Shown in pieces: positions 9,001 to 45,282 of a DNA stretch of 48,435 nt. This DNA comes from Macrostomum lignano. Taxonomy: Eukaryota. Position numbers and translations under genes: made by a program. The notes beneath the pieces are model-generated. The model did no database searches. It was not told the origin of the DNA and was given only the letters and a program-made list of their open reading frames with translations. Each line of letters opens with the position of its first letter. The first letter of the stretch is position 1. The DNA is taken from the NCBI GenBank assembly GCA_002269645.1, contig NIVC01004364.1, positions 1 to 48,435 on the forward strand. The letters are read 5' to 3'.

Positions 9001-12000
9001 CGCACGTGCCCGGTGAGCAGCTCGCCCGGCGAATAGACGCCGATGCCGTTCGGACCGTCGCTGCGGTCCAAGATGATCTCGAAGCTCTGCACCTTGCCAT
9101 TGGGCTCGAACGGCACGTTCCTGGGCCGCTCGATGGCGTTGCTTCGCTCCATTATTTTTGCCGAGTTCGAGCTTTGGACTGAGCCGTTTGCTGCCCGAGT
9201 ATCAAAAAGCTTTTGTCTCTACCTGGCCAAGCCGGGGCTCATCTGGCTTGTTTTATTGCGACCCGCTGGTGTGGGGTGGACCAGGGTAAGAAAAAGAGGG
9301 TCTGACAGACTGGGCGACCAGAGAATGAAATGAAATGCGCGCCATCGCCGAGCCTTAGCCGCAGCTGTTTGTTTATCTCGTCCTTCGAGAAACTTCTTTC
9401 TTGGCAGGGAGGCCCAGAGCTCCTCTGAGCAAAGCAACAACTGCTCAAAACTGGGGTGAGATGGATCGAATAGCCATGCATCCATCTAGAATTCTCTTTC
9501 TCTGCATCTTGCTAAGGCGACTCACCCACCCACTCAGTGTCTGCTGAGACACTCAGTTACCTGGCAATCGCAAAATTCCATTTTTTATTCTGATGCTCCG
9601 CGCGTGCACTTCAAACTGGCTTGCTATTTTCTACCTGAGCGAGACTGCTTTCAGAAAAAGACACGGAATGGGCAGTCAGAGACTGCTCTACTCAAACCTC
9701 TGCGCTTTTGAGCAGAGTTTACTCGTCGCGTCATCTTAGAAACATCCACCCAGTCTCCGACCGAAAAACACTGCAAGCCCCATCGCCTCACTCTTTGGGC
9801 GTTGCCTTCAAAGCAAAGATCTGTACACTCCGTTTGCTGAAAACTTCTTCTAACTGGCTTGCTAATTTCGCAAAGCAAAGTTAGAATGGCAGGCTAGATG
9901 AAACATAATGAAAAATTATGTATAAAGTTGGGCCAGACGACAGAAGCTGAATCTTTACCAAAGTAGTAAATGAAAAACAGGTTCTATAAAATTTTAAGAA
10001 TTTAAAGAAAGAAAGTCGAGCAACGACTGTGAGGGCTACGATTAATTCTCTAGGGAGGGACGGAGAGAGGCGGATTCAGGGACTGAGGCTGAGCGGAGAG
10101 GCAGATTCAGGGACTGAGGCTGAGCGGAGAGGCGGATTCAGGGTCAGAGGCTGAGCGGAAGAGCGGAGAGGCGGATTCAGGGACTGAGGCTGAGCGGAAG
10201 AGCGGAGAGGCGGATTCAGGGACTGAGGCTGAGCGGAGAGAGGCGGATTCAGAGTCAGAGGCTGAGCGGAGAGAGGCGGATTCAGGGTCAGAGGCTGAGC
10301 GGAGAGAGGCGGATTCAGGGTCAGAGGCTGAGCGGAGAGAGGCGGATTCAGGGACTGAGGCTGAGCGGAGAGAGGCGGATTCAGGGACTGAGGCTGAGCG
10401 GAGAGGCAGATTCAGGGACTGAGGCTGAGCGGAGAGGCGGATTCAGGGACTGAGGCTGAGCGGAGAGGCGGATTCAGGGTCAGAGGCTGAGCGGAGAGGC
10501 AGATTCAGGGACTGAGGCTGAGCGGAGAGGAAGATTCAGGGACTGAATCAGAGCGGAGAGGCAGATTCAGGGAAAGAGTCAATGTGAGATAGACATGGAA
10601 TACACAGCCTACATTTCTAATATTAAAAGCTTGAAGGAAAGTCGAGTTTAGGCTAAAAATATGCTTTTTATGCTACTGGCAGTAGACAGATGCTGAACTC
10701 TCTGAAACGCTGCAGGAGGATGAATGGATTCGCACGGCGTTTCGCGAAATTTTGTTCACCAGCCGCGGCTCTGAGTTCCGGGTCCTGACAGAGGCCGGCG
10801 TGCATGGAATTCCACCGCCAGACGCTGAAAGCCTTCAGCAGCCGCCGGCGGCGACAAACCAGCAATCAGCGAACCAGCAGGAGTCACAGGCGAAGCACGG
10901 CTACATCACCCTGCTGCCCGCGGACGCTACGGACAAGGCCGCCGAGGAGGACGAGAATGTCCGCAGCGCGGCGGTGCCCCGGCGAACGATCTTGGAGGCG
11001 AAGATTGCGTGAGTGTCGCAATGGATGGCTGAGTCATTTTGCAATGGCGTAAGCCCATGCTGAATCCCGACGGTTTCGTTTATTTTTCAAAAAACATTTC
11101 GCACACTCGGGCTTTGTCATCGGGGGTGGCTTGGGTGGATCAGTCTTTGCACCCGTCCTCCTGATTCCACTATGGGTTGGCGGTGTCTCCTGATTCCACT
11201 ATGGGTTGGCGGTGTCTCCTGATTCCACTATGGGTTGGCGGTGTCTCCTGATTCCACTATGGGTTGGCGGTGTCTCCTGATTCCACTATGGGTTGGCGGT
11301 GTCTCCTGATTCCACTATGGGTTGGCGGTGTCTCCTGATTCCACTATGGGTTGGCGGTGTCTCCTGATTCCACTATGGGTTGGCGGTGTCTCCTGATTCC
11401 ACTATGGGTTGGCGGTGTCTCCTGATTCCACTATGGGTTGGCGGTGTCTCCTGATTCCACTATGGGTTGGTGGTGTCTTAGTCCATAGGCTTGGGTTAGT
11501 AGCATCCAATAAGGCTTCACCGGGCCTTGAGTTCTGGTCCCAATCTGGGCCACTCGGGCTTCGGCCCCAGGTAGTATGGCCCCCTACAAGATCCAGCGGC
11601 AGAGCCCTTCCTTGGGCTGATCCGCGGGTAGCCCCGGCTTCCCACCCCATTTAACAACAACAAACAAAAGGTCTCATCCCGCTACTTATAGTAATCCATG
11701 ATCCAGATGATGAAAAATATCAACCCCGAGGCAAAATCGGTCTAAAAATTCCAATCTCTTCTGCATCAACCTCGCAGCATCCGGCAGAACTTTCTGGACT
11801 TTCTCGACTCCTGGCGACCGGAAGCGGCTCAGCGCGGCGCCGGCATCGTCCGCGCCAAAACCGAGGAGCTCGAGGCCGAGCTGCGCCTCCGCCTGCACCT
11901 GCACGAGCCTCGGGCCCGCCGAGCCGAGCTGGACGTTCACAACGTGCGCGCTGCCGAGCTCGTGATGCACTCAGAGCGGGTGACGCGCCACACCAAGGGC

Positions 12001-15000: not shown

Positions 15001-17191
15001 TTCTTCATTTATAATTAAATCAATTTTATTCGATATTTTTGCACCTTAGCTGAAAGTAAACTAAATTTTTCCTGTTCAAATTTATTTCATTTTTGCACAT
15101 GTCTGTCTGTTGGCTCTTTCACAAGAGTAGTAGTAAGACCGACTTTCCTACAGATGCACTTCTGATTGCTTGTGAAGCCTTTCATTTTTATTATGGTTTG
15201 GTCGAATAATTATTTACGCGTAAATTTAAGTACTTTCATCTGGCTTTTTTGGAAAAAAAGTTCTAAGAGTACTGGTTAAGTTTGTCCTGATCGGTTTTCA
15301 ACCCTTTTCTTCAAACTGCCAGTTCGCGCAAGTTTGTTGCCAAAAACCAGCGCCTAGACAAAAAGTACATGGTGTTCGGCGAGGGCGAGGACCCGGCTGA
15401 GGCGCAGCATTTCCTTGGCCGAGTCAGGCGGATCTGCCGAGAGGCTCTGGACGGCATGCTGCTGGCTGCCGAGCTGTACTACCGGCAGAAGGGCAGCCGG
15501 CCAGTCACCCGGCCTCAGGCGCTGCACGAGACCTTCGACCAGTGCTCGGAGGTGATTATCTCGAAGCTGCAGGTGAGCGAGAACCTTCTGTCTTCGTAGA
15601 AACAATTGTCTAAACTCTGTAATGTGACACGCCTTCTTGCTTAATGTGAAGTTTTCTGTCTTCGATCCGATATGTCGTTGCGTTTGGACTCCGCTTAATC
15701 AATGAGTCAATCACCTAAAATGTTTCGGATTGTTTGTCACCTACAGTGACTCCAACTCGCAACTCCGCGCATCCGCAGGCCTATTTCGGCCAGGCGGACG
15801 CCTATCACAACTCCTGCGTGATCGAGCTGCGCAACCAGCTCGAACGACTCGAACGCCTTGCCGAGCAAATCCCGCGACTGGCCTTCGAGGATCTCTACAA
15901 CCGCTGCGTCCAATCGGTGCGCGCCGGACTCGACAGGCTGTCCGCCGAGGCGGCGTCAGCACTGACGGAGCTGGAGCAACGACGGCGCAAACACGAGGAG
16001 ACGCTGTCGCCGGCACTTGGCCATCCGGAGCGTCTGCACCGTCTGGAGGCTGTCTGCCGCGCCGAGCAGCAGCGCCACGAGGAGCTCCTAGCCGCCCTGG
16101 CCGCACTGAAGACCGACAAGCAGGTGCGTCTATGATCTGTTTAGTCCTGTGAGAGTCTGTTCCGTGGCCAAACTAAAGGAAAGGTCACTAACTGAGAGCT
16201 AGATAGTTAAAGCTACTTGGTGCCGAACAAGCATGTATTTGGCGCAAGTCCTTTTACCTGGGTCTCTCATGGTAACGATAGTTTGTTCGCACTGGAAATG
16301 CACTCGTAATGTAGGGCTTACATACTCTGTCTATGAGCTACGAGCTATAAAAGTATTGAATTTCAGACCCTTATTCCGGCAAATTATTTAACATCCGTTA
16401 TTTAAATACGACTCCTACTATCATTCTTTTAGTAAACAAAACATCTCTTTTAGTAACTAGTGACGAGTAACTTGACAAATACTGGACTCTTTCCAGCCAA
16501 TCTAAAAGAATTCGTTAACAACGCGGAATCAGACAGAAAGACAGGAAGTGTCAACCCAATAGATTACTCGGATTTCGTGCTAATTTAAGGCTTGTCACTT
16601 GCTGAGAACCCAGCCTGAGAATGCCAGTCCCTCAATGCAATGATAGCGCTCATAAGAGCAATTGCCGCCGCATTTCCGCACTCCACCACGCCACCGCAGG
16701 AGCTGGTAGTCCGCGAGGCCGACTCCTTTGCCAGCCAGGTCAGCCAGCTGTCCGAGCTGCTCTTCATCAAGCTAGACAGCCTCCTCACAGCCGACGAAGT
16801 TGAACGCGGCCGCGTCCCACCCGACCTGCTGCCCACTGCCGACCTGCTGCGCAAGCAGATGGCCGGCGAGCCGCTGCACGACCCCAACAAGGACCAGCTG
16901 ATCCCGCGGGGCAAAGCCAACTGGTCCGGCCTGCCGCTCAACGAGTTCCAGCCGCCTGAGCAGCAGCCGCCCAAGACTCTGCGCTGCGCCACCCTGACCG
17001 TGACGGCCAAGACCACCATGGCGCACAACGAGACGGACAAGGCTCGCAGGGAGTTCTACGCCGCGTTTAAGGAATTCTTCTACGAAGTGATGGAGGAGAT
17101 CCGACGAGCTGCTGCGGAGGCTGACACCCTCGAGGCCAGATGGTTTGACAACTGGCAGAAGTCGGTGCAGAGAATTCGAGAGCTCTACTGA
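1..17191 (+). CDS. CCDC180: Coiled-coil domain-containing protein 180-like, multi-exon, 5' end outside the window
   Basis: Exons joined by GT-AG with consistent phases: 1-14, 769-1095, 1522-1829, 2675-2851, 3358-3569, 3783-4203, 5026-5130, 6762-6845, 10716-11008, 11778-12134, 12555-12945, 13129-13448, 13655-13931, 14043-14221, 14796-14927, 15323-15572, 15779-16123, ~16628-17191 (about 1580 codons). Helical protein with segments I recall from CCDC180: SDVIDRIKEKRRERH, HLHLHEPRARRAELDVHNVRAAEL, DKKYMVFGE and C-terminal WFDNWQKSVQRIRELY*. Needs three 1-nt frameshift corrections (~1023, ~2804, ~3855). Confidence 0.85.
387..680 (+). mobile_element. tRNA-derived CORE-type SINE, copy A
   Basis: Head gaggggttgtagcc with a B-box-like ggttcgattc, core ttgagcaagacacttaac...gtaatatggg resembling the MIR CORE, and a tail shared with the copies at 6318 and 12189. 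Confidence 0.75.
769..1095 (+). CDS. CCDC180: CCDC180 exon (frameshift near 1023)
   Basis: ccag| acceptor and |gtgagc donor. Reads VRPSKLRSDVIDRIKEKRRERH...DQHQL, then LWQGVAEVFADRRNAIGSLDEDLL in another frame. Confidence 0.75.
1522..1829 (+). CDS. CCDC180: CCDC180 exon
   Basis: Phase 1 in, phase 0 out. LESDRVTEIRRVFHSYSEVL...FHQFVQSPQ|gtaag. Confidence 0.8.
1975..2651. repeat. 32-bp minisatellite (gtgccgcctcgatccacctcgaatactttgat)n
   Basis: About 20 units, degenerate at the left end and homogeneous at the right, ending ~25 bp before an exon acceptor. Confidence 0.95.
2675..2851 (+). CDS. CCDC180: CCDC180 exon (frameshift near 2804)
   Basis: VQSPPSLESILSNMRAEQ...PPNACK, then VAAWHQKMQQVCKML|gtaag. 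The shift is needed to match the phase of the next exon. Confidence 0.7.
3358..3569 (+). CDS. CCDC180: CCDC180 exon
   Basis: ttcag| DETNQKYLQQVYEDYERVCQHC...RLEAMD |gtgagc. Confidence 0.8.
3783..4203 (+). CDS. CCDC180: CCDC180 exon (frameshift near 3855)
   Basis: RLFEANAKRIGVQLKSLYKLAQG, then HLWDRHQLDL...CEYFGLERADKKK|gtgagc. Confidence 0.75.
4365..4895. repeat. 23-bp minisatellite with an A-B-B higher-order pattern
   Basis: Units ctgactcacagc(a/t)gtgacacctc (A) and ctgacacacagttgtggcgcctc (B). Confidence 0.93.
5970..6330. repeat. 15-bp minisatellite (cctgaggggttgtag)n
   Basis: About 24 units running directly into the head of SINE copy B. Confidence 0.95.
6318..6630 (+). mobile_element. 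tRNA-derived CORE-type SINE, copy B (full length)
   Basis: A box tagcctagttg, B box ggttcgattcc, gtgtccttgagcaagacacttaac...cagttcacccagctgtaaaatggg (CORE-like), ending in an (aat)n-like tail. Confidence 0.8.
7232..9152 (-). CDS. Arrestin domain-containing protein (alpha-arrestin type) nested antisense in a CCDC180 intron
   Basis: Arrestin_N hallmarks (VYSPGELLTGHVRLEL, LSPGEHVFPFACDLPFELPATFTGSYGNVSYLVKV) and Arrestin_C hallmarks (RAYDIGDNIFVNLNLINSS, PPSGLPNSSIIGVRYWL), followed by a Q/P/G-rich tail. Exons 9152-8334 and 8249-7232 with an 84-nt GT-AG intron. Two homopolymer frameshifts (~8638, ~8229). Confidence 0.85.
10055..10575. repeat. 31-33-bp minisatellite (gagaggcggattcagggactgaggctgagcg)n
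   Basis: Direct inspection; intronic. Confidence 0.93.
10716..13448 (+). CDS. CCDC180: CCDC180 central exons (10716-11008, 11778-12134, 12555-12945, 13129-13448)
   Basis: Phase-consistent GT-AG exons including FTSRG, HLHEPRARRAELDVHNVRAAEL, FSEGGNFCPEEV and WLTNTQ|VKIKAEV. Confidence 0.85.
11120..11668 (+). mobile_element. Possible retroposon carrying an internal 29-bp tandem expansion
   Basis: GC-rich structured body ending in aacaacaacaaacaaaa, inside a CCDC180 intron. Single copy in the window. Confidence 0.35.
11157..11478. repeat. 29-bp minisatellite (ctcctgattccactatgggttggcggtgt)n
   Basis: About 11 near-identical units. Confidence 0.95.
12189..12366 (+). mobile_element. 5'-truncated CORE-type SINE, copy C
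   Basis: Core and tail match copies A and B, with no tRNA head. Confidence 0.75.
15323..17191 (+). CDS. CCDC180: CCDC180 C-terminal exons (15323-15572, 15779-16123, ~16628-17191), DUF4456-like region
   Basis: LDKKYMVFGE, AYFGQADAYHNSCVIELRNQL and WQKSVQRIRELY*. The acceptor of the last exon is uncertain. Confidence 0.82.
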
Positions 17192-18060: not shown

Positions 18061-19081
18061 ATGCGCCCGGTAAGCGCTCTGGCAGCCGTGTGGTTCCTGA
18101 CACTCGCTGCAGTCCAGCTTATCGGGTGCCAGGCCAGTGCTGGAATATCAAAATGGAAATTCAGTCCGGGGAGACTCTTCGACTACGAGCTCGCGAAGTC
18201 GCTTTCAGCTCAGTCCAAAATCGAGTGCACTGTCGCTGCCACCGGTGACCCCGCTGTGCAGCTGGTGGCGTTCAACGCCAGCTCCGGCCTGTGCGCTCAC
18301 TTCAGGTGTCGCCTGGGCCTGAGCCACTGCAGGAAGTGCCGTGCTGCGAACAAGGGAGCTCAGCGAGTGTGGGTGAGTGACAAAAATCCACTCCTAAAAT
18401 TCGAGTATTATGTTTGCTAAACCAACCCACTTGTTTTCTGTTGCAGACAGCCGGCAGTGACTGCTGGACCACCGTGCAGCACAGGGTGTCCGGCTCAGTG
18501 GAATTTTACCGCAACTGGACTCAGTACCAGAGCGAGTTCGGCGAGGGACCCGACGGAAACTACTGGATCGGTGAGTGCATCCCAGATCTGCTCCATTCGC
18601 TTCCTTTTCCAACTCGGACTTCAATGACAAACACCGCCATGACGTCCGCATCTTCCAAGGCCTGAACTCTCTCCACGCTCTCACTGCTTCTGGTCCTCGG
18701 AAGCTGAGGATCCTGATGAAGGCGTGGAACGACTCTGAGCACTGGGCTGAGTACTCCAGCTTCTCCGTGGGTCCCGAGTCGGACAACTACCGGCTGAGCG
18801 TGTCCGGCTTCTCCGGCAGCGCCGGCGTCGGCAACTCGATGTCTCGCAACAATGGCCGCCAATTCTCGACCAGAGACGCTGATCACGACACCTATCACCA
18901 AAACTGTGCGGACAAGTTTTTCGGAGCCTGGTGGTTCTCAGATTGCTCTGATTCATTCCCCAATGGACAATACCGAGATTTCAGTGCGGCCATTGGAGGC
19001 CCATTTGTTGAAGGCGTCATCTGGCGGTATCCGTTCGGCTCCACCTACTCACTGAAAGAATTTGAAATGCTAATTCTTTAA
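18061..19081 (+). CDS. Secreted PAN/apple-like + fibrinogen-related domain protein, copy 1
   Basis: Exons 18061-18372, 18447-18570, 18660-19081 splice to an open 285-aa protein. Hydrophobic signal peptide. FBG motifs [55 protein letters not shown] and YSLK. Confidence 0.9.
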
Positions 19082-19438
19082 AATTGGGCCTTTGGAGCAT
19101 CGGGATCAATTGACTCTGTTGAATACACACTGTCCTAGTGATTAGGCAATGCTATCAGAAAAAAATTAATAACTATATTTTGTGAGAAGCGATCAATATA
19201 TGACAGAAAAACTTTGCAAAAAACTTGTTTGCAGTCAAGCGCATCACCAGAATCCTTTGATTTGTCTTAACCTAATCATAAATACATTTTAGTGACATCT
19301 TGACATCTAAAAGGACAACTAAGTAAAGACATGAAATCTAGAAGCTATTGCTGATAAATCGACTACTTAGTAACAAATAGGAGCCACCTGCAAGGCATGA
19401 AACTTAAAACTTGGTACCCCTGCCGGCGTGACCCACTT

Positions 19439-19689
19439 TAGGGATGTTCGGGTTCGGGTTTCGGGTCGGGTTTTGGCACCGGGTTCGGGGTTCGGGGTAG
19501 GCGTTCGGGTCGGGTTCGGGTTCGGTAGGGTGTTCGGGTCGGGTTCGGGTTCGGTAGGGTGTTCGGGTCGGGTTCGGGTTCGGTAGGGTGTTCGGGTCGG
19601 GTTCGGGTTCGGTAGGGTGTTCGGGTCGGGATCGGGGTTCGGCGTTAGAGCTACCCGAACCCGAAAAAATGGAAACCCGAACACCCCTA
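19439..19689. mobile_element. hAT-type MITE with internal (gggttc)-rich repeats
   Basis: TIRs tagggatgttcgggtt / aacccgaacaccccta and an exact 8-bp TSD acccactt at 19431-19438 and 19690-19697. Confidence 0.85.
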
Positions 19690-20159
19690 ACCCACTTCTA
19701 GGCGTGTTGAGCCCTAGGGTGACTGGAACCCGTTCTACGAGTATAACAGCAAAGAGCACAAGTGGAAAAAGTTCCCTTTGAAGATATGCTTTGAAGATAT
19801 TCCCTACATCTATACTTCTTGCTTCGACTTACTGCTATGCAGGCAGTTTTGACTATTGAAGAAATATCTTAGCAGAATTCAGCGAGCGTCAACGACTGCT
19901 TTCTTTCGCTTCCCAGGGTGATTCAAACTTCTTTCATGGATCAGAACAAAAGCTGCCAGGAAGCGAAGCCAGCAACAGCCTACTCCCTTTGGCTTTTGTT
20001 TCTCTTTGTATCTGCTGTCCATTGTTTCCCGGTTCCGGCAAGGCATCCGTCAGCAATCGCTATTTTTAGTAACGTTTGCAGCTTCTCAACCTGGCTCGTT
20101 CAGTGCTCCAAGCAAACACTTTTTCGCCTCAGCTGCTAGCAAATTTCTGCTCTATTATT

Positions 20160-20958
20160 CAATCTACAGCAATCCACAGAAATTCACAGCAATCCACAGT
20201 AATCCACAGCAATCCACAGCAATCCACAGCAATCCACAGCAATCCACAGCAATCCACAGCAATCCAAAGAAATCCACAGCGATCCACAGCAATCTACAGC
20301 AATCCACAGAAATTCACAGCAATCCACAGCAATCCACAGCAATCTACAGCAATCCACAGCAATCCACAGCAATCCACAGCAATCCACAACAATCCACAGC
20401 AATCCACAGCAATCCACAGAAATCCACAGCAATCCACAGCAATCCAAAGAAATCCACAGCGATCCACAGCAATCTACAGCAATCCACAGAAATTCACAGC
20501 AATCCACAGCAATCCACAGCAATCCACAGCAATCCACAGCAATCCACAGCAATCTACAGCAATCCACAGCAATCCACAACAATCCACAGCAATCCACAAC
20601 AATCCACAGCAATCCACAGCAATCCACAGAAATCCACAGCAATCCACAGCAATCCACAGCAATCCACAGCAATCCACAGAAATCCACAGCAATCCAAAGA
20701 AATCCAAAGAAATCCACAGCGATCCACAGCAATCCACAGAAATCCACAAAAATCCACAGAAATCCACAGCAATCCACAGAAATCCACAGCAATCCACAGC
20801 AATCCACAGCAATCCACAGCAATCCACAGCAATCCACAGCAATCCACAGCAATCCACAGCAATCCACAGCAATCCACAGCAATCCACAGCAATCCACAGC
20901 AATCCACAGCAATCCACAGAAATCCACAGCAATCCACAGAAATCCACAGCAATCCACA
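20160..20958. repeat. 10-bp minisatellite (caatccacag)n
   Basis: About 80 units between FReD copies 1 and 2; explains the long track ORFs here. Confidence 0.97.
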
Positions 20959-21612
20959 TCAACATACTTCTGGGCTTCCTCACAGAGCACTTCCGAAGCT
21001 TAAGCTAGAGATGCTAAATAGGCAGGTTGCTGGTCATTATTTTGGGGGAAAAATGGATATGAACTTCAACTTTTGTTTCAAGGGACGCCCTGATCCACTG
21101 GTCACATTAGTCACTACAGTTGATGCAGTCGTAGCGCAGGATGAACGCGCATTATCTCTGAAACCTTTCAAAAAACTTCAAGAAGATATTATCGACTTTA
21201 GATTTTTATAGTAGGTCAGAAAAAGTCAACTTTTTATGTGATCTTACCGCTTTATTTAAGTGTGCACTTTCAAACGTCTTGAGAGAACAAAAAATCTTAA
21301 CAAAAATTTCATTCTTATCAAAGAAACAGTTACAAGTTTAAAAGACTTTTTTTAAACTCAGGTTTTACAACTTCCGATTTTATCTATACGAGCCAGATTG
21401 AGGGTGCAGACAGAAAACAGGTTTACATCCAATTAAAATATTACATGTAAGATTGTTTTCATGTAAGTATTACATGTAAGAATGTCAGAATATTTCTGAT
21501 GTTTTTGTTTCGCTCAAGAGCCCTCATTTCGCTCAAAAAAAGTAAATAAATAATTAAATAGACGATAATCACTGGTCCTCATTGATACATTTTCCAAAAT
21601 CACCCACAGTAT

Positions 21613-22610
21613 CTAAAAGATCAGCATTTCAAACTTTTTCAATGAGTATTCCCTGTCGAAGGGATATTTCCAAAGAATTCCCAGATTAGGTGCACCACCA
21701 ATGGCTGAAGCGGAGTCCTTGTACTCTCCGTTCGGGTTGGTGTCAAAACAGTTGGAGAACCACCAGGCACTGACGAACCTCTCGGCGCAATTGTAGGTAG
21801 CTTGAACGTCATGGTCGGCGTCCTTGGTGGTGAACTGGAAGCCGTTGCTTCTGGCCAACGAGTCGCCGATGCCGGCGCTGCTGGAGAAGCCGGACACGCT
21901 CAGCCGGTAGTTGTCCGACTCGGGACCCACGGAGAAGCTGGAGTACTCAGCCCAGTGCTCAGAGTCGTTCCACGCCTTCATCAGGATCCTCAGCTTCCGA
22001 GGACCAGAAGCAGTGAGAGCGTGGAGAGAGTTCAGGCCTGGGAAGATGCGGACGTCATGGCGGTGTTTGTCATTGAAGTCCGAGTTGGAAAAGGAAGCGA
22101 ATGGAGCAGATCTGGGATGCACTCACCGATCCAGTAGTTTCCGTCGGGTCCCTCGCCGAACTCGCTCTGGTACTGAGTCCAGTTGCGGTAAAAGTCCACT
22201 GAGCCGGACACCCTGTGCTGCACGGTGGTCCAGCAGTCACTGCCGGCTGTCTGCAATGTAAAAAGATTTTTTGCTAAAGTGCCAATTCAGACTATGGGGA
22301 TGCAAAAGCTGCTGAACACAGGACTCACCCACACTTGATGATCTCCCTTGTTCGCATTGCGGCACTTCCTGCTGTGGCTCAGGCCCAGGCGACACCTGAA
22401 GTGAGCGCACAGGCCGGAGCTGGCGTTGAACGCCACCAGCTGCACAGCGGGGTCCGAGTCCGCAGTCGCCATGCAGCTGATGTCGCTCCGTCCCCAAAAC
22501 GAAGAAGCAGCCTCATAGTCGACCAGACCGTCTCGACTCAGCCGCCAAGTTCTCTTAGCTGAGACAACTCCGGCCACGCGGGGATTTAGAGCTGCGAACA
22601 GCAGGATCAT
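21613..22610 (-). CDS. PAN/apple-like + fibrinogen-related domain protein, copy 2
   Basis: Exons 22610-22329, 22250-22127, 22037-21613, intact frame (276 aa). Same motifs as copy 1. The signal peptide is weaker and an alternative start lies at 22637. Confidence 0.88.
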
Positions 22611-23249
22611 CCATTTAAATCCGTTTGTCGAGCACATAGAGATAATTTATTGGTCTTCGATTTTCGATCTGTATCGATTTATGTAAAAATAGCCGGTCTG
22701 CAGCTGTGTCTCAGCCCAGTGGCTCCTCAACGGAAAGGTTCTGATGATTTCGAAGTCAGGTAGAGTCGAGGTGATCTTTCAGCGACAATTTTACCCATCG
22801 GCAGTTCTGGCCATTCCGCAGACACCTGAGCTCACACAAGCGCGCCAATACTGCACGCAGGCACGGCACTCATATGCGCTCACACAGGCTGTACAGCAAC
22901 CTTGACTTACTAATCATCAAGCATGCACACTCTCTGTGCTTTTAGGGCTTTGCCCACATGAGTGTGTGAACCGCACGACAGCCCTGGCCTCGTATTAAAT
23001 GCAACGATCTGTATGAAAATTCCTTTAAAACTCTTAGAACTACACGTGTACTCGGCGTTTCTCTGAGACCCTGGCGCCCCAGAATCTGTTGTCCACGCTA
23101 CATATGTTCACGCCTCGGCTCAAAGTCGCGCCTTGTAACACTGTCTTTCGTTAATTATGTTCCCTTTTAAGATCTCAAAACAGCTGTCTGATGTATTTTG
23201 GTTTGCTTGTTGTTGGCTTGTTGCTCAAGCAGCCTCGAGAAAATGGATG

Positions 23250-23306
23250 GCAGACTGTTGTAACACCGTGCAACAGAGGACGTCCAGCTCAGCGAGCTTT
23301 CAATGA
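23250..23306 (+). pseudogene. Decayed exon-2 fragment of the PAN-FReD family
   Basis: gactgttgtaacaccgtgcaacagaggacgtccagctcagcgagcttt (DCCNTVQQRTSSSASFQ*) aligns without gaps to gactgctggaccaccgtgcagcacagggtgtccggctcagtggacttt ([16 protein letters not shown]). Confidence 0.65.
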
Positions 23307-23345
23307 ACCCTGAAACTGCTCAATAATACCAAGCCCTAGCCTCTA

Positions 23346-24044
23346 AGTAGAATGCATGAGGGGGCTTCTGGGACAAAATTTTTCACGTCCTCCATAATCC
23401 CATTAAATCCATCCATATTATTATGAAATTTTTTTTTTCAAAGGGTAAGGACCCTGGGTTAGGGGATTTAAAGTTTTAGGGATGTGGTAGCACGTTGCGG
23501 ATTGAATGTGGGGAGAAGAATGCAGATTATTTTCTGATTGTTTCGAAGATGCTATGGGTGGATGTCAGTGGATTATGTAGGACACCTGTTATGCTCTGAT
23601 TCTGTCATGGAGGAAGGAGGATTAGTTAGGAGGATTATAGATGACGTTTTGTGAGCGAGTAGGACACCTGTTATGCTCTGATTCAGGGATAATATGGATG
23701 GATTTAATGGGATTATGTTCGAAGTTTTCGGAGCAAGTAGGACACCTGTTTGCTCTGATTCTGTCGGGAACAATATGGATGGATTTAATGGGATTATGGA
23801 GGACGTTTTGTGAGCGAGTGCGACCCCCCCCCCGTTTTTTTCTGATTCTGTCAGGGATAATATGGATGGATTTAGGATTATGTTCGAAGTTTTCGAACTT
23901 CGAACTTCGAACATAATCCTCGAAAGGGGGGAGCAAGTGCGACCCCCCTTTTTCTGATTCTGTCGGGGATAATATGGATGGATTTAATGGGATTATGGAG
24001 GACGTGAACAATTTTGTCCCAGAAGCCCCCTCATGCATTCTACT
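23346..24044. mobile_element. Non-autonomous TIR element (~700 bp)
   Basis: ~75-bp near-perfect terminal inverted repeats (agtagaatgcatgagggggcttctgggacaaaa...) and internal subterminal repeats aatatggatggatttaatgggattat. No TSD found. Confidence 0.75.
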
Positions 24045-24739
24045 CCCCTAGTCTATATTTTTATACATTGTTATCCAGACACACAAGATCTGCTTGACTG
24101 AGTATTTGACTGAGACTACTGTGCATTGAACTACCAACACAACTGAACCTTCGAAATGCAACTCAAATAATATAAAACCCCACGTTCAACGTGGTAACAA
24201 AATTCGGTAACGAATTTGCGAGAATTTTCTACTTGAGCAGCATGTCTGAATGCAAATGAATGAGCATTCAAGAGTCTGAGACTTGACTTTATCGTCTTAA
24301 CAGGTGTTGGACAGCTAAACTTGTCGAGTTTGTAATTGCGTGTAACGATGGAGAGGAAAAAGCCAGTTTATTTACCGGCAATATGCAATAAACAAAAGGA
24401 TAGATTCTAGTTTTGGTTGAAGATCGCGTAGCTACGTGCGTAATCCCACTGGAGGATTTCCAAGAAACAGTCGAGCAAGCAAATGACAAAACCCAGTCAG
24501 AAAGGAGAAACTGAAAATCAGGCACTCATTGTGCGTAGTACTGGATAAACCTCATCGACAGACCTGTGTAAAACCTGATTACGTGCTCTGCTCTGAGTTT
24601 GACGATGACGTCTACAAAATATAATCCAATAAGTAAACTGTAAGTGAAAAAAACTTGACACGAATATTTATAAGTCCATAAAGTCTCTCTTGGATAAAGA
24701 TTAACATCGACAGAATTAACTTTTGCAAACTTTGTTGCC

Positions 24740-25760
24740 TCAAAGGATGAGCATTTCGATCTCTTTTAGCGAGTAGTACGGACCGAACGGCGACTTCCAG
24801 ATCACACCTTGAGCGCGCGGGCCACCAATGGCTGACGAGAAATCGCGGTACTGTCCGTTCGGGTGCGTGTTGTGGCAGTCAGCGAACCACCAGGCTCCGA
24901 AGTAGCGAGAGCCGCAGTTGTCGGAGTGAACGTCGTGGTCGGCGTCCTTGGTGGTGAACTGGAAGTCGTTGCTTCTGGCCAGCGAGTCGCCGATGCCGGC
25001 GCTGCCGGAGAAGCCGGACACGCTCAGCCGGTAGTTGTCAGATTCGGGACCCACGGAGAAGCTGGAGTACTCAGCCCAGTGCTCAGAGTCGTTCCAGGCC
25101 TTCATCAGAATCCTCAGCTTCCGAGGACCAGAAGCAGTGAGATCGTGAAGAGTGTTTAGACCTACATTGAGAAAGATAAATAAAATCATTATGATGTCAC
25201 TTAGCTAAAAATTGCAGACAAAGAAGCAATGCCAATAAAAATCTTATAGAACCATACAAATGGTTACCTATCCAGTAGTTTCCGTCGGGTCCCTCGCCGA
25301 ACTCGCTCTGGTACTGAGTCCAGCCGCGGTAAAAGTCCACTGAGCCGGACACCCTGTGCTGCACGGTGGTCCAGCAGTCACTGCTGATGGTCTGAAAGGG
25401 GAAAAACTATAAAAGTCAAAATTAAAATTTGACTCCATACGAGAGCACAGTGAGAAGACTTACATTTCGATTCAGCCACACTATTTCAGCCCCACTGTTT
25501 ACATCGCGGCACTTCCTGAAGCTGCTCAGGCATCGGTAGTGAGTGCACTGGCGAGAGCTGGAGTTGAATGCCACCAGCTGCACTGCAGAGTCGTGGCTTG
25601 CAGTACCAGTACATTGGATCTTGGACTGAGCCGTGACCGACCTTAGTGACTCATAGTTAGAGAGGCGGTCACAGCTTGACCACCAGCTTGTCAACAAAGC
25701 ATCGCTGAATGTCAGCGAAGTTTCTGCAGCCAGCAGCAGTAAGCAAGTCAAGTAGTTCAT
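24740..25760 (-). CDS. Secreted PAN/apple-like + fibrinogen-related domain protein, copy 3
   Basis: Exons 25760-25464, 25391-25268, 25161-24740, intact frame (280 aa). Signal peptide [19 protein letters not shown]. Confidence 0.9.
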
Positions 25761-26763
25761 TGGAGATATTGTATCTTTGTCTGAATTTTGGCGAAAGACA
25801 GTGGCATGCAGAATAAGAATCAGAAAGCCGTAAGTATTAAGTAACAGTGCACTAACGACTATGATGCCTCAGCTACTTCACCAAACGAATGAAAAGCCTT
25901 TGTCTTGGCACAACTTACGTTTTATGAAAACTCTTTGCTTACGTAGTAGGCTTATAGCAGGTTCCGATTAAGCTTCCCATGTGTCAGGGTGGCTTCCTCG
26001 CAGGGCCTCATTAGTTTTATAACTTTCCCGCCCAAAGCAGACAGATGCGTGGTCTTTTTTGACGGAGGTGATGCTGCTGGAAGATGCAGGGTTAGGAGGC
26101 TTTAGCTAGAGCCCAATAAGGTAGACTTTGGGTATAGAAAAGCTAAAGAAACTGTCATTTGAAACTCACTCAGTTTTTTACTGCCACAGAAGCACCGAAA
26201 TTCTGCGGCAGTAGCTAATTGGCAATTGCGCATTAATTTTTAACGGCACGAGCAGAGTGGCTGCATGCGATGCTGTTGAATTACCTCAAAAATACAACGA
26301 GGTACTTTCAAGAGCTTCCATGTGCTCTTTCTCAGCATCCATCATACTTCGTAGTTGAAACATTGGGATGCATGATGAACTTAGTGCGGCAATGTCAAGA
26401 AAAAACTACAATTTTCCCAAAGAGATCCCAAAGCTCATTAGTGACATGAACGCAGGGGTAGTGCAGAGTCTTTAACAGCCGCTGGAATTCTTGGATGAAG
26501 GCTCGCATTTGTTCCACGGCCTGTGCTGAGTACCCCCCGCGCCTTGCCGCTGTGTCCCTTCCGGGACAGCCCTGCAGCTAAGAGGCTGAGTAGCTTTATG
26601 TCGCGCCGATGTTCCATGGGTTCGATTCGGCAATGTGCAGGCTGCATTGGTTCGGATTTAATGAACGGACGAGGATATAGAGGTGTACAGAAGACCTGTG
26701 ATTGCTGTTGATTTTAAGCGCGCTCCATTTATGCTGTCGGGGTCAATACTTTGATCGAGTAAG

Positions 26764-27030
26764 GACTAGTTGGCAGGTAAAGGCTGGGCCTCTTGCTTGT
26801 CGGAGGAAGGACTAGTTGGCAGGTAAGTGCTGAGCCTCTTGCTAGTCGGAGGAAGGTCTAGTTGGCAGGTAAGTGCTGAGCCTCTTGCTAGTCGGAGGAA
26901 GGTCTAGTTGGCAGGTAAGTGCTGAGCCTCTTGCTAGTCGGAGGAAGGTCTAGTTGGCAGGTAAGTGCTGAGCCTCTTGCTAGTCGGAGGAAGGACTAGT
27001 TGGCAGGTAAGTGCTGAGCCTCTTTCTAGT
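26764..27030. repeat. 46-bp tandem repeat (aggactagttggcaggtaagtgctgagcctcttgctagtcggagga)n
   Basis: About 6 units between FReD copies 3 and 4. Confidence 0.93.
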
Positions 27031-27682
27031 CGGAAACGCGATTTCGAGACAGCTGGTTTGGTGAGCCAGTTCGCACAGGCTTGTAGATTAGCCTATCTCC
27101 GGATCAGCTTATTTATACCTTTACAGATTCTCCCTGTTTGTCTCTCGCTGTTCTCTCTGAGCTATAAAACCCAGATGCTCGCCGCGACGATATCGAAACG
27201 TAAACTGTACACAGGGCTAATAAGCCCTCTCGATGATATATCTATTGCAGTCAGTCAGAATCAGCCAGCGTGGAGGGGGGTGGGTGAGATGGGCCTGGGC
27301 TAAATCAGCGTACATAGCGAACTATATAAAGCACGTTCATTAAATCACGCAATGCAAGGAAAATCAATACATTAATAGTCTACCTCCGAAACACTGATCA
27401 TCTGACAGGAGTGGGAGGCCAGAGTATTATGTGATTGATCTGTATGCTTTCAGGCCCGGCAAGCCTCTCATCAAGTTGAAGCCTTCAGAATTTAGGCTAT
27501 ACGAGTGTGTTAGAGGGAAGGAAAATAATCTTCTTACTCTATAATTTTGAAGCCAACTAACAATAAAACACTAACTACCAAATTTAGTCAAGTTCTATTC
27601 AAATAGTAATAGCCTTATTTAACCATTACCGATTCATTGTTTATCATAGTCTCATAGAACAAGCAACGGCAGATCTGTTTCT

Positions 27683-28716
27683 TTAGAGAACAAGCATTTC
27701 GATCTCTTTCAGCGAGTAGTACGGACCGAACGGCGACTTCCAGATTATACCCTGGGCCCTCGGGCCATCAATGGCTGACGAGAAATCGCGGTACTGTCCG
27801 TTCGGGTGCGTGTTGTGGCAGTCAGCGAACCACCAGGCTCCGAAGTAGCGCGAGCCGCAGTTGTCGGAGTGAACGTCGTGGTCGGCGTCCTTGGTGGTGA
27901 ACTGAAAGTCGTTGCTTCTGGCCAGCGAGTCGCCGATGCCGGCGCTGCCGGAGAAGCCGGACACGCTCAGCCGGTAGTTGTCAGACTCGGGACCTACGGA
28001 GAAGCTGGAGTACTCAGCCCAGTGCTCAGAGTCGTTCCAGGCCTTCATCAGAATCCTCAGCTTCCGAGGACCAGAAGCAGTGAGATCGTGAAGAGTGTTT
28101 AGACCTACATTGAGAAAGATAAATAAAATCATGATGTCACTTAGCTAAAAATTGCAGCCAAAGAAGCATGCCAATAAAAAGCTTATAGAACCATACAAAT
28201 GGTTACCGATCCAGTAGTTTCCATCGGGTCCCTCGCCGAACTCGCTCTGGTACTGAGTCCAGCCGCGGTAAAAGTCCACTGAGCCGGAGACCCTGTGCTG
28301 CACGGTGGTCCAGCAGTCACTGCCGGCTGTCTGCAATGTAAAAAGATTTTTTGGAAAAGTGCCAATTCAGACTATGTTAATGCAAATTCTGCTGACACAG
28401 GACTCACCCACACTCGCTGAGCTCCCTTGTTCGCATTGCGGCACTTCCTGCAGTGTCTCAGGTCCAGGCGACACCTGAAGTGAGCGCACAGGCCGGAGCT
28501 GGCGTTGAACACCACCAGCTGCACAGCGGAGTCACTTCTGGCAGCGGCAGTGCACTGGATTTCAGAAGAAACTTTCAGCGACCTCAAGGCCTCATAGTCA
28601 AAGAAGCTGTCGCGGCTTGAGCTCCACTTTCTTTCGGACGACCCGGCGTGGATTTCAAAGTACTGGATTGAAAGAATCAGAGCACAGATGATATGCTTGA
28701 TTTCGATAGAATCCAT
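27683..28716 (-). CDS. Secreted PAN/apple-like + fibrinogen-related domain protein, copy 4
   Basis: Exons 28716-28408, 28330-28207, 28104-27683, intact frame (284 aa). Confidence 0.9.
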
Positions 28717-31700
28717 CGGCAGTAACTCTAATAGGTGAAGATGTGAGATCTCGTGATTTCGGCCTGCCTAATCTTGGGGTAGGTAAATCTCCAGGGTGCT
28801 TTTTCATGCAAAAATATCATAAATAGTTGTTTAAGTATAAAGCGAACGTTATCGATCGAACTGCAACTAATGGACGTTTTTAAATGCCCGTTTTTATCAA
28901 AGCTTCAGTTTCTATGCAACAATGCAAAGATTTTACTGACATTGCGAAGATACCAGAATAAAGGTAAATTGTCAACGGCCTGATGGGAGATATTTACGCG
29001 ATTACGCGATTTTTACTGTTGTAAAAGTGACATCTCTAAAATCGATATGCTGCTTTTAGCTTTTTCAAAGCTCTGCCCAAGGTCCGACTGGAGTGAACTG
29101 TAGCTAGCGCTCCAGCTGGTTTGAACAATGAGTATGCATAGCAACAAGACGGGCCACTCAGCATTGAATGAATAAATGCCTATGGGCTATGGCACTACTC
29201 TTAAATCTAGTAGGCTCACTTAAAAAATGCGTAAAGGGTTCGTAGGTAGTCCAGACGGCAGATTCTATATAATCTAGATGTGTCCCTCCATCTTTCGCTA
29301 ATGTATTTATAGGCTGCCACTGAGGCCCCGAAAACCCCGCCGGTGATTGGGCCACAGACACTAGGGGTACTGCTAATGCTTGAGAGAAGCAGAAGCTTTA
29401 GTTTATGGTCTTAACCCCGGGGTTTTCGCGCCAGGCGGCTGGAGTGGCACATCTCAGATAATATACATGTAGAATCTGTAGTCGAGACTGGGTATTTGCT
29501 GTCTATGGTCTTAAAATCGGTATGCAAATACATGTACGTGTTACGTCTGGTGCATTTGAATAGAAGCTTACAAAACACTGTTGCGGAAAATCTTCGAGTC
29601 ATGAACAGACCCAGACCACTGCGCAGCTGTAAGCTCAGAAAGCTGTATCTATCATCACAAACACTAGGGGACATTAATCGAATGGTACCCCTAGTTTCGT
29701 CTATATTGTAGACCGGGCTGGTTTTGCGATGCTGCCTACCAAATCCGAGTATGAGCGTATTGCGGGCTAGCTATTAAAGACCGCAGACTACCATAGACAG
29801 AGGTTTCTGCTGTTGCGTTGAATACAAATTGTTTTTTTCACACTAAGCTAGACCACAAACAATCAAGGTTGCAATCCTATACATAAAAGTAGATTATAAG
29901 ACCATATGGACATCACGATGGACATCTCTACCTCATTTTGAAACTAAATAGACAAGCATGAGCTTCAAATTGGACATCGAGGCTTTAATTTAAAGCCACT
30001 TCTCCCTATACGGGTCGAGTAATTTTCAAAGGCTATAGATCCTGTACCTAGTACCTAGTCACCCTAGTGGCTAGACTCAACGCGGTTTTTTTCTTTCTTT
30101 CTTGCTTTCTTTCGGTAGCTACTGTATGCTGCGTAGCTAGAGATCAGGGCGTGTAAGTGTTCCGAACAGGACTCAGTTATAATGGTAAGTTTTTTGGGAT
30201 ATACACATGTACATTACATGCGTATGCAAGTAGTGTGTGCAAGCTTCCTTCTTAGCCTATACTAATTCTTTTGGGATTAATAACAGATTTTAATAACAGA
30301 TTTAAAATTCAAATTCTATTCAGATTTTTTATTTAAAACTGTGCAATAAAAGTAAAATTGCTTATAACAAAATAGTATGCATTTTTAGCATAGCCTAAGG
30401 TAATACTTGACTACTTGTTTTATGTAGTAAAGTAATTTATAATTTATAAAAATTGTATTAAGTTGTTTGCACGTGATTTTGACTCCTCGTGTATTTTTCA
30501 GACAATTAATTCTACTTTTTAGTCGTCCGTCTCGATTAGGGCCTAGAAAAATCATCGTCGGCACTTTGAGGCTTTTCATATTACCAATTCCAGATTCAGA
30601 ATCGGTTCGGATCTTCCAAGAAAAACAGCAGTATAACTATTTAATTCTGTTGAATGTTTGACTGCCTTAACAACCTCACGACACTTGTCTTAGCACAATC
30701 TTTCACTTTCTTCTTGGCGATTGTCATTCAATAATAAAAACTTTATAGCACGTATCTCCCTCTAGTTATGGAGACAAAAAGTTATACTTCACAAATTGGT
30801 TCTGGTTCTGGAACCAGAACAAGCAATATGAAAAGGCGCTTTGTGTCCTTAGTAGTAGTACTAAGTACCTTAGTCGGCCTGCCCTTAGTCTATTTATATA
30901 ATTAAATTCTTAATTGATAATGTAATACTAGGCCCTAATAATATGATTATGAATTTAGCATAAATAAAATTTTATATTGAGCCGCTTAAGCAGCATCTTA
31001 AATAATGTTTAATCAGAATGACAGAAATAGCTGGCGCCTTGCCAGTTGCCATTCCATTTCTGGTGCCTAGTCACTAGTGTATTAAGAGTGAGACTATGGA
31101 CTTATTTACCCTTTTTAACTAAAACAATGCACACATTTAATAATTATTAATAAATATTTATTTTTAAGTTGCAGCTAAATATCTAATAAATAATATCTAA
31201 TTAATATTTATTAATATTGCCCTGTGGCAGCCAGACTGTATGCAACTGGCAGCACCAGTGCAGGCGTGCAGCTGCACTAGAAACCCCCTAACCTCTGTCT
31301 AGCTGAGGTGGGGTGGTTGCACACCGCGCTAGCCGGCTCGCTAGCCCGCTAAGCCAGGGGGTTGGTGTAGCCAATCATGCCATGCCACCTGTTTTGCACC
31401 TCCCTTGGCTTGGCCTCTCAATCTGTTTGTAAATATATAAATACAAACGCAAAGCAGCACAAAATCTTCGCTGCTATTCCATCTATTGAAACAAAAAGGC
31501 CTTCCACCTCAGCTCATTATTAATATTGCCCATTATTATTAGACCTAGCCCTGGCCTAGGTCTAATATTAAGCCAAGGCCTAGCTAGGCCTATAATAGTT
31601 GTCTTATATCTATATAAAATGTTGTGATTTAAACCTATTTTCAATTATCACTAAACGCTCATTGCTTAATGCTCATTGAGGCCCTAGATAAATCACAATC

Positions 31701-34341
31701 AAAATATTATGCTTAAGTGCAATCTAGGTATTTACTTGGCTATTTCTATGGCTATAGCTTATAGGTCAAAATGATGACAAATCAAAAGACAATAGGCCTA
31801 GTCAAAAGGGCAATGCAATAGTCTAAAAAGTGACAGTCACAATAATATAATGAACAATAATATGTTTATTATAATTACAAGTTCATATGTTATATTTTAG
31901 ACTTCTATATATAGTTAGGTAGCTATATATATATCTTGGTCATGGCACATGAGTCATGACCAAGATGGCCATACACCAAGATGACCACAGCTTTAAATAT
32001 TTAAATCAAGTAATATAAGCCTAGGTCTTTATATTTCACTTATTTCTTATTGATAGTATTTTATATTAGGTATAGATCTTCAAGTCTTAAAAAGATAGAT
32101 ACTATAGAGTGGCCCACATAACATGCCTGATTAAAAACATTAATAACTTTTGTCATTTGCAACCAATGCTGACAAAATTTTACAAAGTTGCCACATGTTT
32201 AGTATAGCATTATATTTGCAAAATTTATATATGCAAGCAAGCACTCATACATATACAAAAGGAGGTCCTAAGTTTAATGTCAAAAAAGCAAGCTGCAAGC
32301 ATGTGCTGCATTCACTATGCTTTCTATATGTGAGTGTATTTTAGTGTGCATAAATTTTGCAAATATAGCCTAATGCTATACTTGTTGCAATGTTGTGTTA
32401 ATATTTTGTCAACATTGGTTGTGAATAATTAAAAGTTATGAATGTTTTACTTTAAATCAGGCGCATTATATGGGCCACCTTATATAATAGTAACTATATT
32501 ATATAATAGGCCTAATCATTCCTTTTGGCTTCCGTTTTATTGTAACCTGACCAATAGATATTTATCCACTAAATAAAGCAAGTATATAGCCTAATACAAA
32601 ATAAAAACATTGCTGCCAGATATTTATCCCATTTTTATATACCATTACCACTAGCAATGGTTTCTTGATAAACTAATAGTGACAGATCAGATAGATGTAG
32701 GCTCTAATGATAGAGAATAAATTGGCACAAACATAGAAAAGATTAAAGTTTTTGTATGATAGGTAGGTAATTAGTTTCAAATCTATTATTTATTTCAGTA
32801 TTTATGAATATGACTGATTAAACATTTTATATAATAATTAATATAATAATAGCTATTAAGATTCTAATTAATGGTAAAAAGAGAGTAGATATAATAGAGA
32901 TTCAATATTGTGGCTATCTTGATGTGTGGCCATCTTGGTCTTACAATATGTAGGCCTATGTTAAAATGTATTTGTTGAAAATGCCTGAATAGTTAAAATT
33001 AGGCCTAGACTAAGGCCTATTTAAATATATTTGTTAAATGTATTAAAATGTATAAATATGCCTATCCAATATAGAATGTGTTAGAATATGTATAATAATA
33101 ATTTAGACATAGGGATCCAAGTTTAAAAACATTTTAAATGCTTAATTTTGATACTTGCACTGTTTGACTTTCAATATTTTAAGTAAACTTGTTTTGTCAA
33201 TATACTAAAAGCTTGATCAAGTGCTTGACTCTACAAAAGTACAAGTACAAATACTTGTACCAATACAAAAAATGCTAAAATACAATAAAAAATCAATGAA
33301 ATTTGTTGCACTTAATTTATTTGAAACATGTTTTTATTTATTTAAGATTATGAATAATATTCAAAAAAGTTTCAAAACTAAAATATGACTTTTGTTTTGT
33401 ATATTTAACTTTTTTTAAATTATTTGCTTTATTTAAATATTTTTTGTTAGTTTGCTATCATAGATCTGGAAAAGCTGCCTAGTATAACATATATGTTTAT
33501 TACTAATCTAATATAAGGTATGTATTGATTATGTGTAATAATTTTTTTCTAGAAGTATTTACAAGTTTTGTTTTTATTGTACAGCAAAACCATTGAAATG
33601 ATGCAAAATCTATATATAAATTTTACACTGTTAGTCTGTTTGTATGTCTATAATGTTTTAAGAACTTTTGTGCCAATTTTTTAAAACTAGCTTTAAAAAT
33701 ATTATTTTTCAGTGGTCAGGCATAACATTTTATTGATGAAACTTTCAAATTGAAAGTATGTAAAATATTTGAAAAATGTTTTTAATACCTTTCAGTGGGT
33801 GCTCCATTTGAATTTTGTTCCTTATTGTGCACACTGTATTGTACAAAGTACCTGGCTTTGTTTAGTTCAGCCATTTACATCTCTCCTTGACTAATGTATA
33901 CTGTAGAATGTATATTTAATAATAAAAGCTAATAAGTTTTTTCCCTTTGGCTTAGGCTTGTAGTTTGTGGTATTGATTGAGTTTTATTGTTTACCAGTCA
34001 GATAGACAATAAAGACAGGGGGTTCTAAAACTGGCCTGAAATGCAATGCACAGACAAAACAAGCCTTTTTCATCCCCTTAAACTGCTCTAATATTGTTTG
34101 TATTATTTTGCAACACAGAAGGCAGCACAGTTGCAGATGGGGGCAATAATGAGCCCAATTAATTCAGACTCAAATGAAAAAACAATGAAAAATTCAGATT
34201 GGAAGTCAATCAAATTTGAAATATGATGTTTTTTAATGCTTTCAACCTGTTTCAGGTCTTTTCAAACCATGTGATGTGAGCTTTGGCCAAGCTTTTGCTG
34301 CTGGCTATCTGGAGCAAACAATTTTCATCCTACACTGAAAG

Positions 34342-43177: not shown

Positions 43178-43216
<39 letters not shown>

Positions 43217-45172: not shown

Positions 45173-45282
45173 CGCTGTCTCAAAATTTCGAAACTGGCGC
45201 AAATGCGATATGATATGATGAAAATTCGTCAAACCGTTAGCTTTGCCATCAGAATTGTATATATAGTTGTTTACTATAATCC

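Follow-up and report, generated by a model that had tools for sequence, protein, structure and literature searches.

What kind of protein does a compact cluster of four related genes encode in the free-living flatworm Macrostomum lignano, and how have the copies been kept alike in one part and distinct in others? The cluster lies on contig NIVC01004364.1 (assembly GCA_002269645.1), whose positions 1 to 48,435 form the whole stretch of DNA analysed here (the window), and occupies 18061-28716, which spans exactly from the ATG of the first gene (g1) to the ATG of the fourth (g4). Free-living flatworms are used as models of regeneration and of sexual selection, and their innate recognition molecules are almost uncharacterised. 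A preliminary description of this DNA proposed that the four genes encode secreted proteins in which a PAN/apple-like module is joined to a truncated fibrinogen-related domain (FReD). We hold with moderate confidence that g1 to g4 represent a tandem FReD family of Macrostomum carrying a PAN-like N-terminal module, in which gene conversion has acted on a common scaffold and the remaining parts would provide a binding repertoire.

Hand-built models resolved the region into four complete genes of three exons, with GT-AG boundaries at all introns, a single stop codon each, and no defect in the four reading frames or the eight splice-site pairs. g1, on the plus strand, comprises 18061-18372, 18447-18570 and 18660-19081 and encodes 285 amino acids (aa). 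Its exon 1 opens with the ATG at 18061, carries the leader and the N-terminal module (aa 1-104) and ends in phase 0 before a GTGAGT donor at 18373; exon 2, bounded by an AG acceptor and a GT donor, encodes the start of FReD subdomain B up to the NYWIG motif; and exon 3 encodes the remainder of subdomain B and subdomain P, with a D-x-D-x-D calcium site and the Cys228-Cys241 pair, ending with the stop codon at 19079-19081. The other three genes have the same layout on the minus strand: g2 (22637-22329, 22250-22127 and 22037-21613; 285 aa), g3 (25760-25464, 25391-25268 and 25161-24740; 280 aa) and g4 (28716-28408, 28330-28207 and 28104-27683; 284 aa), the last segment of each including the stop codon. 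Exon 1 of every gene encodes a hydrophobic leader followed by a Cys-containing module of ~77 aa and ends in phase 0, and exons 2 and 3 encode the FReD. The most divergent copy of exon 1 is that of g3, with a 3-aa deletion and an LNRN extension; the exon 1 model of g4 was picked for its co-linearity with g1-g3. g1 and g2 are convergent and g2, g3 and g4 stand in tandem, separated by spacers of ~2 kb. No fifth copy or fragment was found in the window by tblastn. The three-exon structure of four intact paralogues was thus confirmed, with sizes of 280-285 aa instead of the 276-285 aa given in the preliminary description. The secreted character proposed there agrees with a hydrophobic N-terminal stretch in all four proteins (mean Kyte-Doolittle value over 9 aa of 2.3-3.2), which is compatible with a putative signal peptide. 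The two motifs quoted there are also present, S-x-I-x-C in the forms SKIEC, SDISC, SKIQC and SEIQC, and AVQLVAFN with the variation that g4 reads VVFN.

The FReD of these proteins is incomplete. The Pfam profile Fibrinogen_C (PF00147) matched all four of them with expectation (E) values of 1e-44 to 1e-45 and scores of 153-157 bits against a cut-off of 22. The matches covered only profile positions 39/40-218 of 221, beginning in g1 with exon 2 at profile position 40, and positions 1-39 were unmatched in all family members scanned. The best relatives in the Protein Data Bank (PDB) were ficolin-1, ficolin-2 and angiopoietin-like FReDs, all aligned from their GGWTV strand onward, with ficolin-1 as the top solved relative of the FReD part (E 4e-37). 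Since the profile is matched only from about position 40 and the solved relatives align only from GGWTV onward, subdomain A is missing. The cysteine of the subdomain A 'CDM' motif is replaced (QRVW-T) and the proteins depart from the complete A-B-P organisation. The truncation noticed earlier is therefore real, and the lack of an oligomerisation stalk also held up, as collagen, coiled-coil or immunoglobulin superfamily (IgSF) regions have no room in 280-285 aa. Only 77 aa separate the leader from the FReD, g1-g4 contain neither a match to the collagen profile PF01391 nor a Gly-X-Y run, and no Ig-family Pfam profile matched them at a nominal E<=1. In the part of the FReD that remains, the calcium-binding loop and the disulfide of subdomain P are kept: the arrangement DADHD...NC(x12)C, invariant in g1-g4, aligns with DQDND...NC(x12)C of ficolin-1. 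At the start of exon 2 there is a family-specific cysteine, C110 of g1 (codon 18474-18476), which belongs to a 'DCW' motif and replaces a glycine of the canonical FReD 'GGGW' strand. Its equivalent is the sole unpaired Cys of the mature protein in the divergent member P0037, and C110 could either bridge two molecules through a disulfide or fasten the module to the FReD.

What, then, is the module that precedes the FReD? An exhaustive phmmer search with exon 1 against 1.84 billion representative proteins returned 12 matches, all from this same family, and no similarity of the module outside the family was detectable by sequence. The divergent members P0034, P0035 and P0037, with 23-28% identity in the module, retain W5, C29, L41, F/Y44 and C51 (module numbering) together with the 'CW' cysteine at the start of the FReD. 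An AlphaFold2 (AF2) model of aa 28-104 of g1 alone, built on 21 family sequences, had a predicted local distance difference test (pLDDT) value of 77.9 and a predicted template modelling (pTM) score of 0.65, and arranged the module as beta(15-22), alpha(26-34), beta(41-45), beta(50-56) and alpha(64-70); AF2 run on the alignment of the four full-length paralogues gave a pLDDT of 32. When the module model was compared with the PDB by Foldseek, the match of highest probability was the Sarcocystis lectin SML-2 (2yip_D; probability 0.94, template modelling (TM) score 0.48, root-mean-square deviation (rmsd) 3.7 Å, 48 columns). Other PAN/apple matches were a second SML-2 entry (2yil, probability 0.91) and apple-5 of Toxoplasma MIC4 (TgMIC4; probability 0.54). 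The copper oxidase 6ryx, which we take to have an N-terminal PAN domain, was matched with a probability of 0.47. The remaining matches comprised one FMRP chain (probability 0.41, rmsd 10.8 Å) and others with probabilities <=0.33, nearly all at an rmsd of 8.5-11 Å.

By inspection, the module could be placed in a gapless register with the PAN cores of an Asterias protein, MIC4 and SML-2, in which C29 and C51 correspond to the first and fourth core cysteines, and A33 (nearly invariant) and V39 (invariant in close members) to the second and third; hhalign selected the identical register. Of the four PAN core cysteines, which make two helix-to-strand disulfides in PAN/apple domains, only the first and fourth are thus retained (C56 and C78 in g1). 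These two core cysteines pair in one disulfide in the HGF N domain. With this register and the predicted structure, the N-terminal module is probably, rather than demonstrably, a degenerate PAN/apple-like fold.

The absence of a canonical subdomain A raised another explanation, which we regard as improbable: that the module is itself subdomain A of the FReD, strongly diverged and enlarged by a Cys-rich insertion, so that each protein would be one complete though aberrant FReD with no second domain. The module is located exactly at the position of subdomain A, only a short intron separates it from the remaining FReD, and BLASTP alignments run co-linear and almost gapless from the module into canonical A subdomains (...QAYCDMDTDGGGWT). 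These co-linear stretches, however, are almost without identities, and Pfam profile positions 1-39 find no counterpart in any member. Moreover, the top 50 Foldseek matches of the module included not one FReD chain, against three independent PAN/apple proteins. A derived subdomain A is therefore unsupported, both by the BLASTP alignments and by Foldseek.

We then examined how the four copies differ by aligning the loci with 500 bp of flanking sequence and calculating pairwise Nei-Gojobori values of synonymous divergence (dS) and of the ratio of nonsynonymous to synonymous divergence (dN/dS, or omega) for each region. Over exon 2 and the 5′ part of exon 3, identity among all four copies is 97-100%; their flanks could not be aligned. 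Between g1 and g2, identity was 98-100% over a segment that starts at the end of intron 1 and extends across exon 2 and the whole of intron 2 into the 5′ part of exon 3, forming a gene-conversion tract at 18441-18814 on the plus strand (partner 22256-21883; 98-100% identity per 60-bp bin) with exact runs of 62, 75 and 157 bp. Exon 2 of g2 has one mismatch relative to that of g1 and the shared tract runs on into intron 2. dS for this pair was 0.00 in the tract, 1.3 in the leader and N-terminal segment, and too saturated to be computed in the P region. Other pairs share other segments: g2 and g4 have intron 1 in common (96% identity), and g3 and g4 have in common intron 2 and exon 3, with 95-100% identity over most of the length. 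Because different pairs of genes share different introns, in addition to a near-identical exon 2 and 5′ part of exon 3, we interpret the pattern as mosaic gene conversion.

Results by region showed the same partition. In residues 105-200 of g1, dS was 0-0.15 and dN/dS, where computable, 0.14-0.24; in the leader and N-terminus, dS ranged from 1.3 to saturated and dN/dS, where computable, was 0.30-0.61; in the P region (residues 201-285 of g1), dS was 0.9-2.8 or saturated, with 0.20 for g3/g4, and dN/dS was 0.11-0.25. In the module core omega was 1-2, but with 1.5-4 synonymous differences behind it this value carries no meaning. Saturated dS at the ends compared with 0-0.15 in the centre implies that the copies are old and that their central scaffold has been homogenised by conversion. 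Duplication followed by segmental gene conversion thus keeps the scaffold (module core, exon 2 and subdomain B) nearly identical, and both the pocket loops of the FReD and the half of the module nearest the N-terminus are old, divergent and under purifying selection. Entropy over 16 family members peaks at module residues 28-62 and in P-subdomain loops at 204-211, 223-226, 230-234, 239-245, 261-264 and 268-274; these loops surround the calcium loop and the Cys pair, and residues 105-200 are nearly invariant. The UniProt model P0023 joins the N-terminus of g4 to the C-terminus of g2, which suggests that the same exchange takes place elsewhere in the genome or is possibly an assembly chimera.

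These data also bear on a further reading, in which the four copies would be recent, non-functional duplicates, either debris of evolution or an artefact of the assembly. In its favour, the region is full of minisatellites, and the UniRef models recovered for M. lignano are incomplete and frequently joined to adjacent or retroelement open reading frames (ORFs). We nevertheless consider it highly implausible: the frames and splice sites are intact in all four genes, dN/dS is 0.1-0.25 where conversion has not homogenised the sequence, and the copies are old and distinct, with dS saturated in the leader and N-terminal segment and with the deep divergence of the P region given above, while their flanks share no alignable sequence.

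How widely is this family distributed? Indexed homologue searches retrieved ~40 UniRef clusters that carry both the module and the FReD, all of them from M. lignano and named 'Fibrinogen C-terminal domain-containing protein', with no family name. Beyond Macrostomum only the FReD part aligns, with ~60% query coverage. An exact look-up showed that the g1-g4 proteins themselves are absent from the protein collection; a by-eye comparison of P0024 (UniRef100_A0A1I8GBC7) with g1 found 5 of 250 residues to differ. In the literature on FReDs of Macrostomum or other flatworms we found no description of this family. In current databases, then, the family is limited to Macrostomum and unnamed, and the preliminary description was right in calling it locally expanded and in proposing that it could be lineage-specific, given the tandem cluster and the exclusively M. 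lignano origin of the relatives with the module. Its further remark that it recognised no named family in the architecture holds in so far as no describing paper was found, but PAN/Apple domains combined with FReDs are known elsewhere and the proteins already stand in UniProt, unnamed. Some of the M. lignano models in UniProt are composite: in P0028, fragments of the family are joined with a WSC-domain gene that has a PAN-like tail; in P0005, a family member is preceded by a weak match to PAN_1 (E 0.017); and P0003, P0009 and P0010 include fused retroelement ORFs. Such models suggest further clusters of the family next to WSC/PAN genes and transposons.

A number of results weigh against the account that we favour. 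With respect to the module, none of the PAN profiles (PAN_1 to PAN_4, clan CL0168) matched any of 19 members (13 + 6) scanned singly, in scans at a nominal E<=10 in which the HMMER filters drop most matches above ~0.1. PDB profile searches with the module came back empty. A homologue search with the Asterias PAN domain yielded no candidates and hence no deep PAN profile, so a core profile of five sequences was used for hhalign, which returned a probability of 1.7% against this profile and of 0.1% against the Asterias PAN domain. The structural matches to PAN/apple domains have TM scores of 0.41-0.48 and E values of 0.5-1.2, Foldseek found no match in the PDB at E<=0.001, and the alignment behind the module model contains 21 sequences with an effective number (Neff) of ~2.8. 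Moreover, the assignment of the module to the place of subdomain A is deduced from linear position only. The PAN/apple likeness put forward earlier thus draws weak support from Foldseek, where PAN/apple lectins were the sole consistent matches though below significance (E ~0.5, TM <0.5), and none from Pfam, PDB profiles or hhalign.

Regarding ligand binding, N-acetyl recognition in tachylectin 5A (TL5A), PmFREP and M-ficolin is reported to involve two Tyr, the second Cys of subdomain P (through its backbone NH) and the His next after that Cys (PMC7858579). We compared this pocket through the alignment of g1 with ficolin-1, extended by hand to g2-g4 by means of the paralogue alignment. Directly after this second Cys, g1 has S, g2 has F, and g3 and g4 have H; the equivalents of the two Tyr are F/P/R/R and S/R/P/P in g1-g4, these equivalences being uncertain owing to a 3-residue indel in the loop. 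As the canonical acetyl-binding residues appear mostly not conserved, classical acetyl-lectin activity is doubtful and should not be assumed. Finally, positive selection on the P region is not supported, with pairwise omega values of 0.1-0.25.

With these points taken into account, we propose that each protein would be made of a cleavable leader, a disulfide-containing alpha/beta module of ~77 aa encoded by exon 1, and FReD subdomains B and P. The fold of the module would be closest to a cysteine-depleted PAN/apple domain and would sit at the usual place of subdomain A. The paralogues may form a repertoire of extracellular binders that differ in ligand specificity, their ligands being either glycans or proteins, probably not recognised via the N-acetyl pocket of ficolins and TL5A. 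Converted scaffold against anciently diverged loops would make this cluster a clean natural case of diversity being kept where it matters in multigene recognition families. More tentatively, and with less than even confidence, we suggest a receptor design peculiar to flatworms, in which a PAN/apple lectin domain depleted of cysteines would stand structurally in place of subdomain A, producing a compact single chain with two potential surfaces for binding carbohydrate or protein. Conversion would maintain from such chains this animal's repertoire for pattern recognition (or for sexually selected ligands). If true, the loss of subdomain A and the recruitment of a small module would amount to a new structural solution in a much-studied lectin fold. 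FReD expansions with assorted N-terminal modules, as well as gene conversion, are a familiar theme; what sets this family apart is a module undetectable by sequence, with two of the four core Cys, placed instead of subdomain A.

Comparison with known systems helps to situate these proteins. Ficolins and tachylectin 5A are FReD lectins of innate immunity. They provide the closest solved B and P subdomains and share with g1-g4 the aspartates of the calcium loop, the P disulfide and secretion. In contrast, the flatworm family has neither a collagen or other N-terminal oligomerisation region nor subdomain A, the two pocket Tyr are not conserved and the His is found only in g3 and g4, and, relative to ficolins and TL5A, there are 3 additional residues in the loop that connects NG.Y with G(V/I).W. 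Short proteins with one PAN-type module N-terminal to a FReD exist elsewhere, as in the secreted 'MFAP4-like' protein P0064 (327 aa) of Asterias rubens, but there PAN_1 is detectable by Pfam (E 1.4e-6), the four core cysteines are present and a complete FReD follows (profile positions 4-219). PAN/Apple and fibrinogen domains have been described together in Biomphalaria FREP1 and some Lottia FReDs, and PAN/Apple in 4 Crassostrea genes (PMC7588048). Unlike in these PAN/Apple and FReD proteins, the Macrostomum module replaces subdomain A instead of preceding it, and FREP1 additionally has an IgSF domain.

The cluster resembles Biomphalaria FREPs and further expanded FReD families of invertebrates in its lineage-specific tandem expansion, the exchange of sequence between paralogues and a variable recognition end. 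The molluscan FREPs differ in having one or two IgSF domains and an interceding coiled-coil region, both absent from g1-g4, and the use of conversion differs as well, since in the Macrostomum cluster it homogenises the scaffold while the binding loops stay anciently diverged. With Sarcocystis SML-2 and apple-5 of Toxoplasma MIC4, the modelled module would share the beta-alpha-beta-beta order and the position of the helix-to-strand disulfide, but there is no sequence similarity and the module has Ala and Val at two of the core cysteines; galactose binding cannot be inferred from this likeness. By analogy with ficolins, tachylectins and FREPs, a role in defence would be the default assumption.

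Could the genes instead serve reproduction? We weighed the possibility, which we judge unlikely, that g1-g4 encode proteins of the seminal fluid or of another sex organ and that the family was diversified under sexual selection or conflict. Among the 76 transcripts of M. lignano that are limited to the prostate and represent putative seminal-fluid proteins, at least 7 have BLAST matches to FReDs (RNA815_9549.1-.4, 11128.1, 14220 and 50917; PMC5977470 Table S1). The lengths of these FReD transcripts, 0.8-1.36 kb (except for 50917, a fragment of 400 nt), would suit proteins of ~285 aa, and some of them map to Mlig scaffold identifiers with several genes each, which suggests similar clusters (PMC6953679 supplement). 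The forward primer of Mlig-pro8 encodes NGNYWMG, which is near the family hallmark DGNYWIG and hints at kinship. WSC and PAN-like genes, which are prostate-limited classes too, adjoin family members in the fused models P0028 and P0005.

The published prostate genes Mlig-pro7, -pro8 and -pro13 (Weber et al. 2018) come from the same species, encode FReDs in short transcripts and include several genes per scaffold identifier. However, none of the six primers used for their RNA interference (RNAi) matched the window: the best had 4 mismatches in 20, where it falls on the codons for NYWIG, and the other five gave no match with up to 5 mismatches allowed. The peptides that the primers encode are absent from every family protein retrieved. 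Identity of g1-g4 with Mlig-pro7, -pro8 or -pro13 was rejected on the basis of this primer comparison: primers and encoded peptides are unlike g1-g4 and all retrieved family members, so the known prostate FReDs are other genes. As regards function, a seminal-fluid role would be as conceivable as an immune one. If the genes were reproductive, they would extend the FReD class among the putative seminal-fluid proteins of Macrostomum.

The surroundings of the cluster are rich in repeats. The window is studded with long minisatellite arrays, with periods of 10-148 bp and up to 80 copies, which create long spurious ORFs. They are located at 1951-2657, 4358-4885, 5966-6333, 10065-10573, 11158-11478, 20160-20962, 26757-27034, 35893-36728, 37151-37918, 39483-40474, 43537-44037, 44687-45173 and 47286-48435. 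An array of 80 copies of 10 bp lies between g1 and g2, and one of 6 copies of 46 bp between g3 and g4. Upstream of the cluster, an arrestin-domain gene at 7232-9152 on the minus strand encodes Arrestin_N (E 1e-22) and Arrestin_C domains and a Q/P-rich tail. It is flanked by plus-strand exons at 3222-3662 and 15734-17191 with matches to DUF4455 (E 6e-13) and DUF4456 (E 2e-25). The arrangement suggests that the arrestin-domain gene is nested within an intron of a CCDC180-like coiled-coil gene whose end lies shortly before g1. Downstream, the G+C content falls sharply to 26-35% at 30001-34000, compared with ~50% elsewhere. Further on, an ORF of 991 aa at 40979-43954 on the plus strand is very rich in Q, P and H and enters a 28-bp minisatellite at its 3′ end; no significant Pfam domain was found in it, and the ORF probably represents a single large exon from the gene for a low-complexity nuclear protein.

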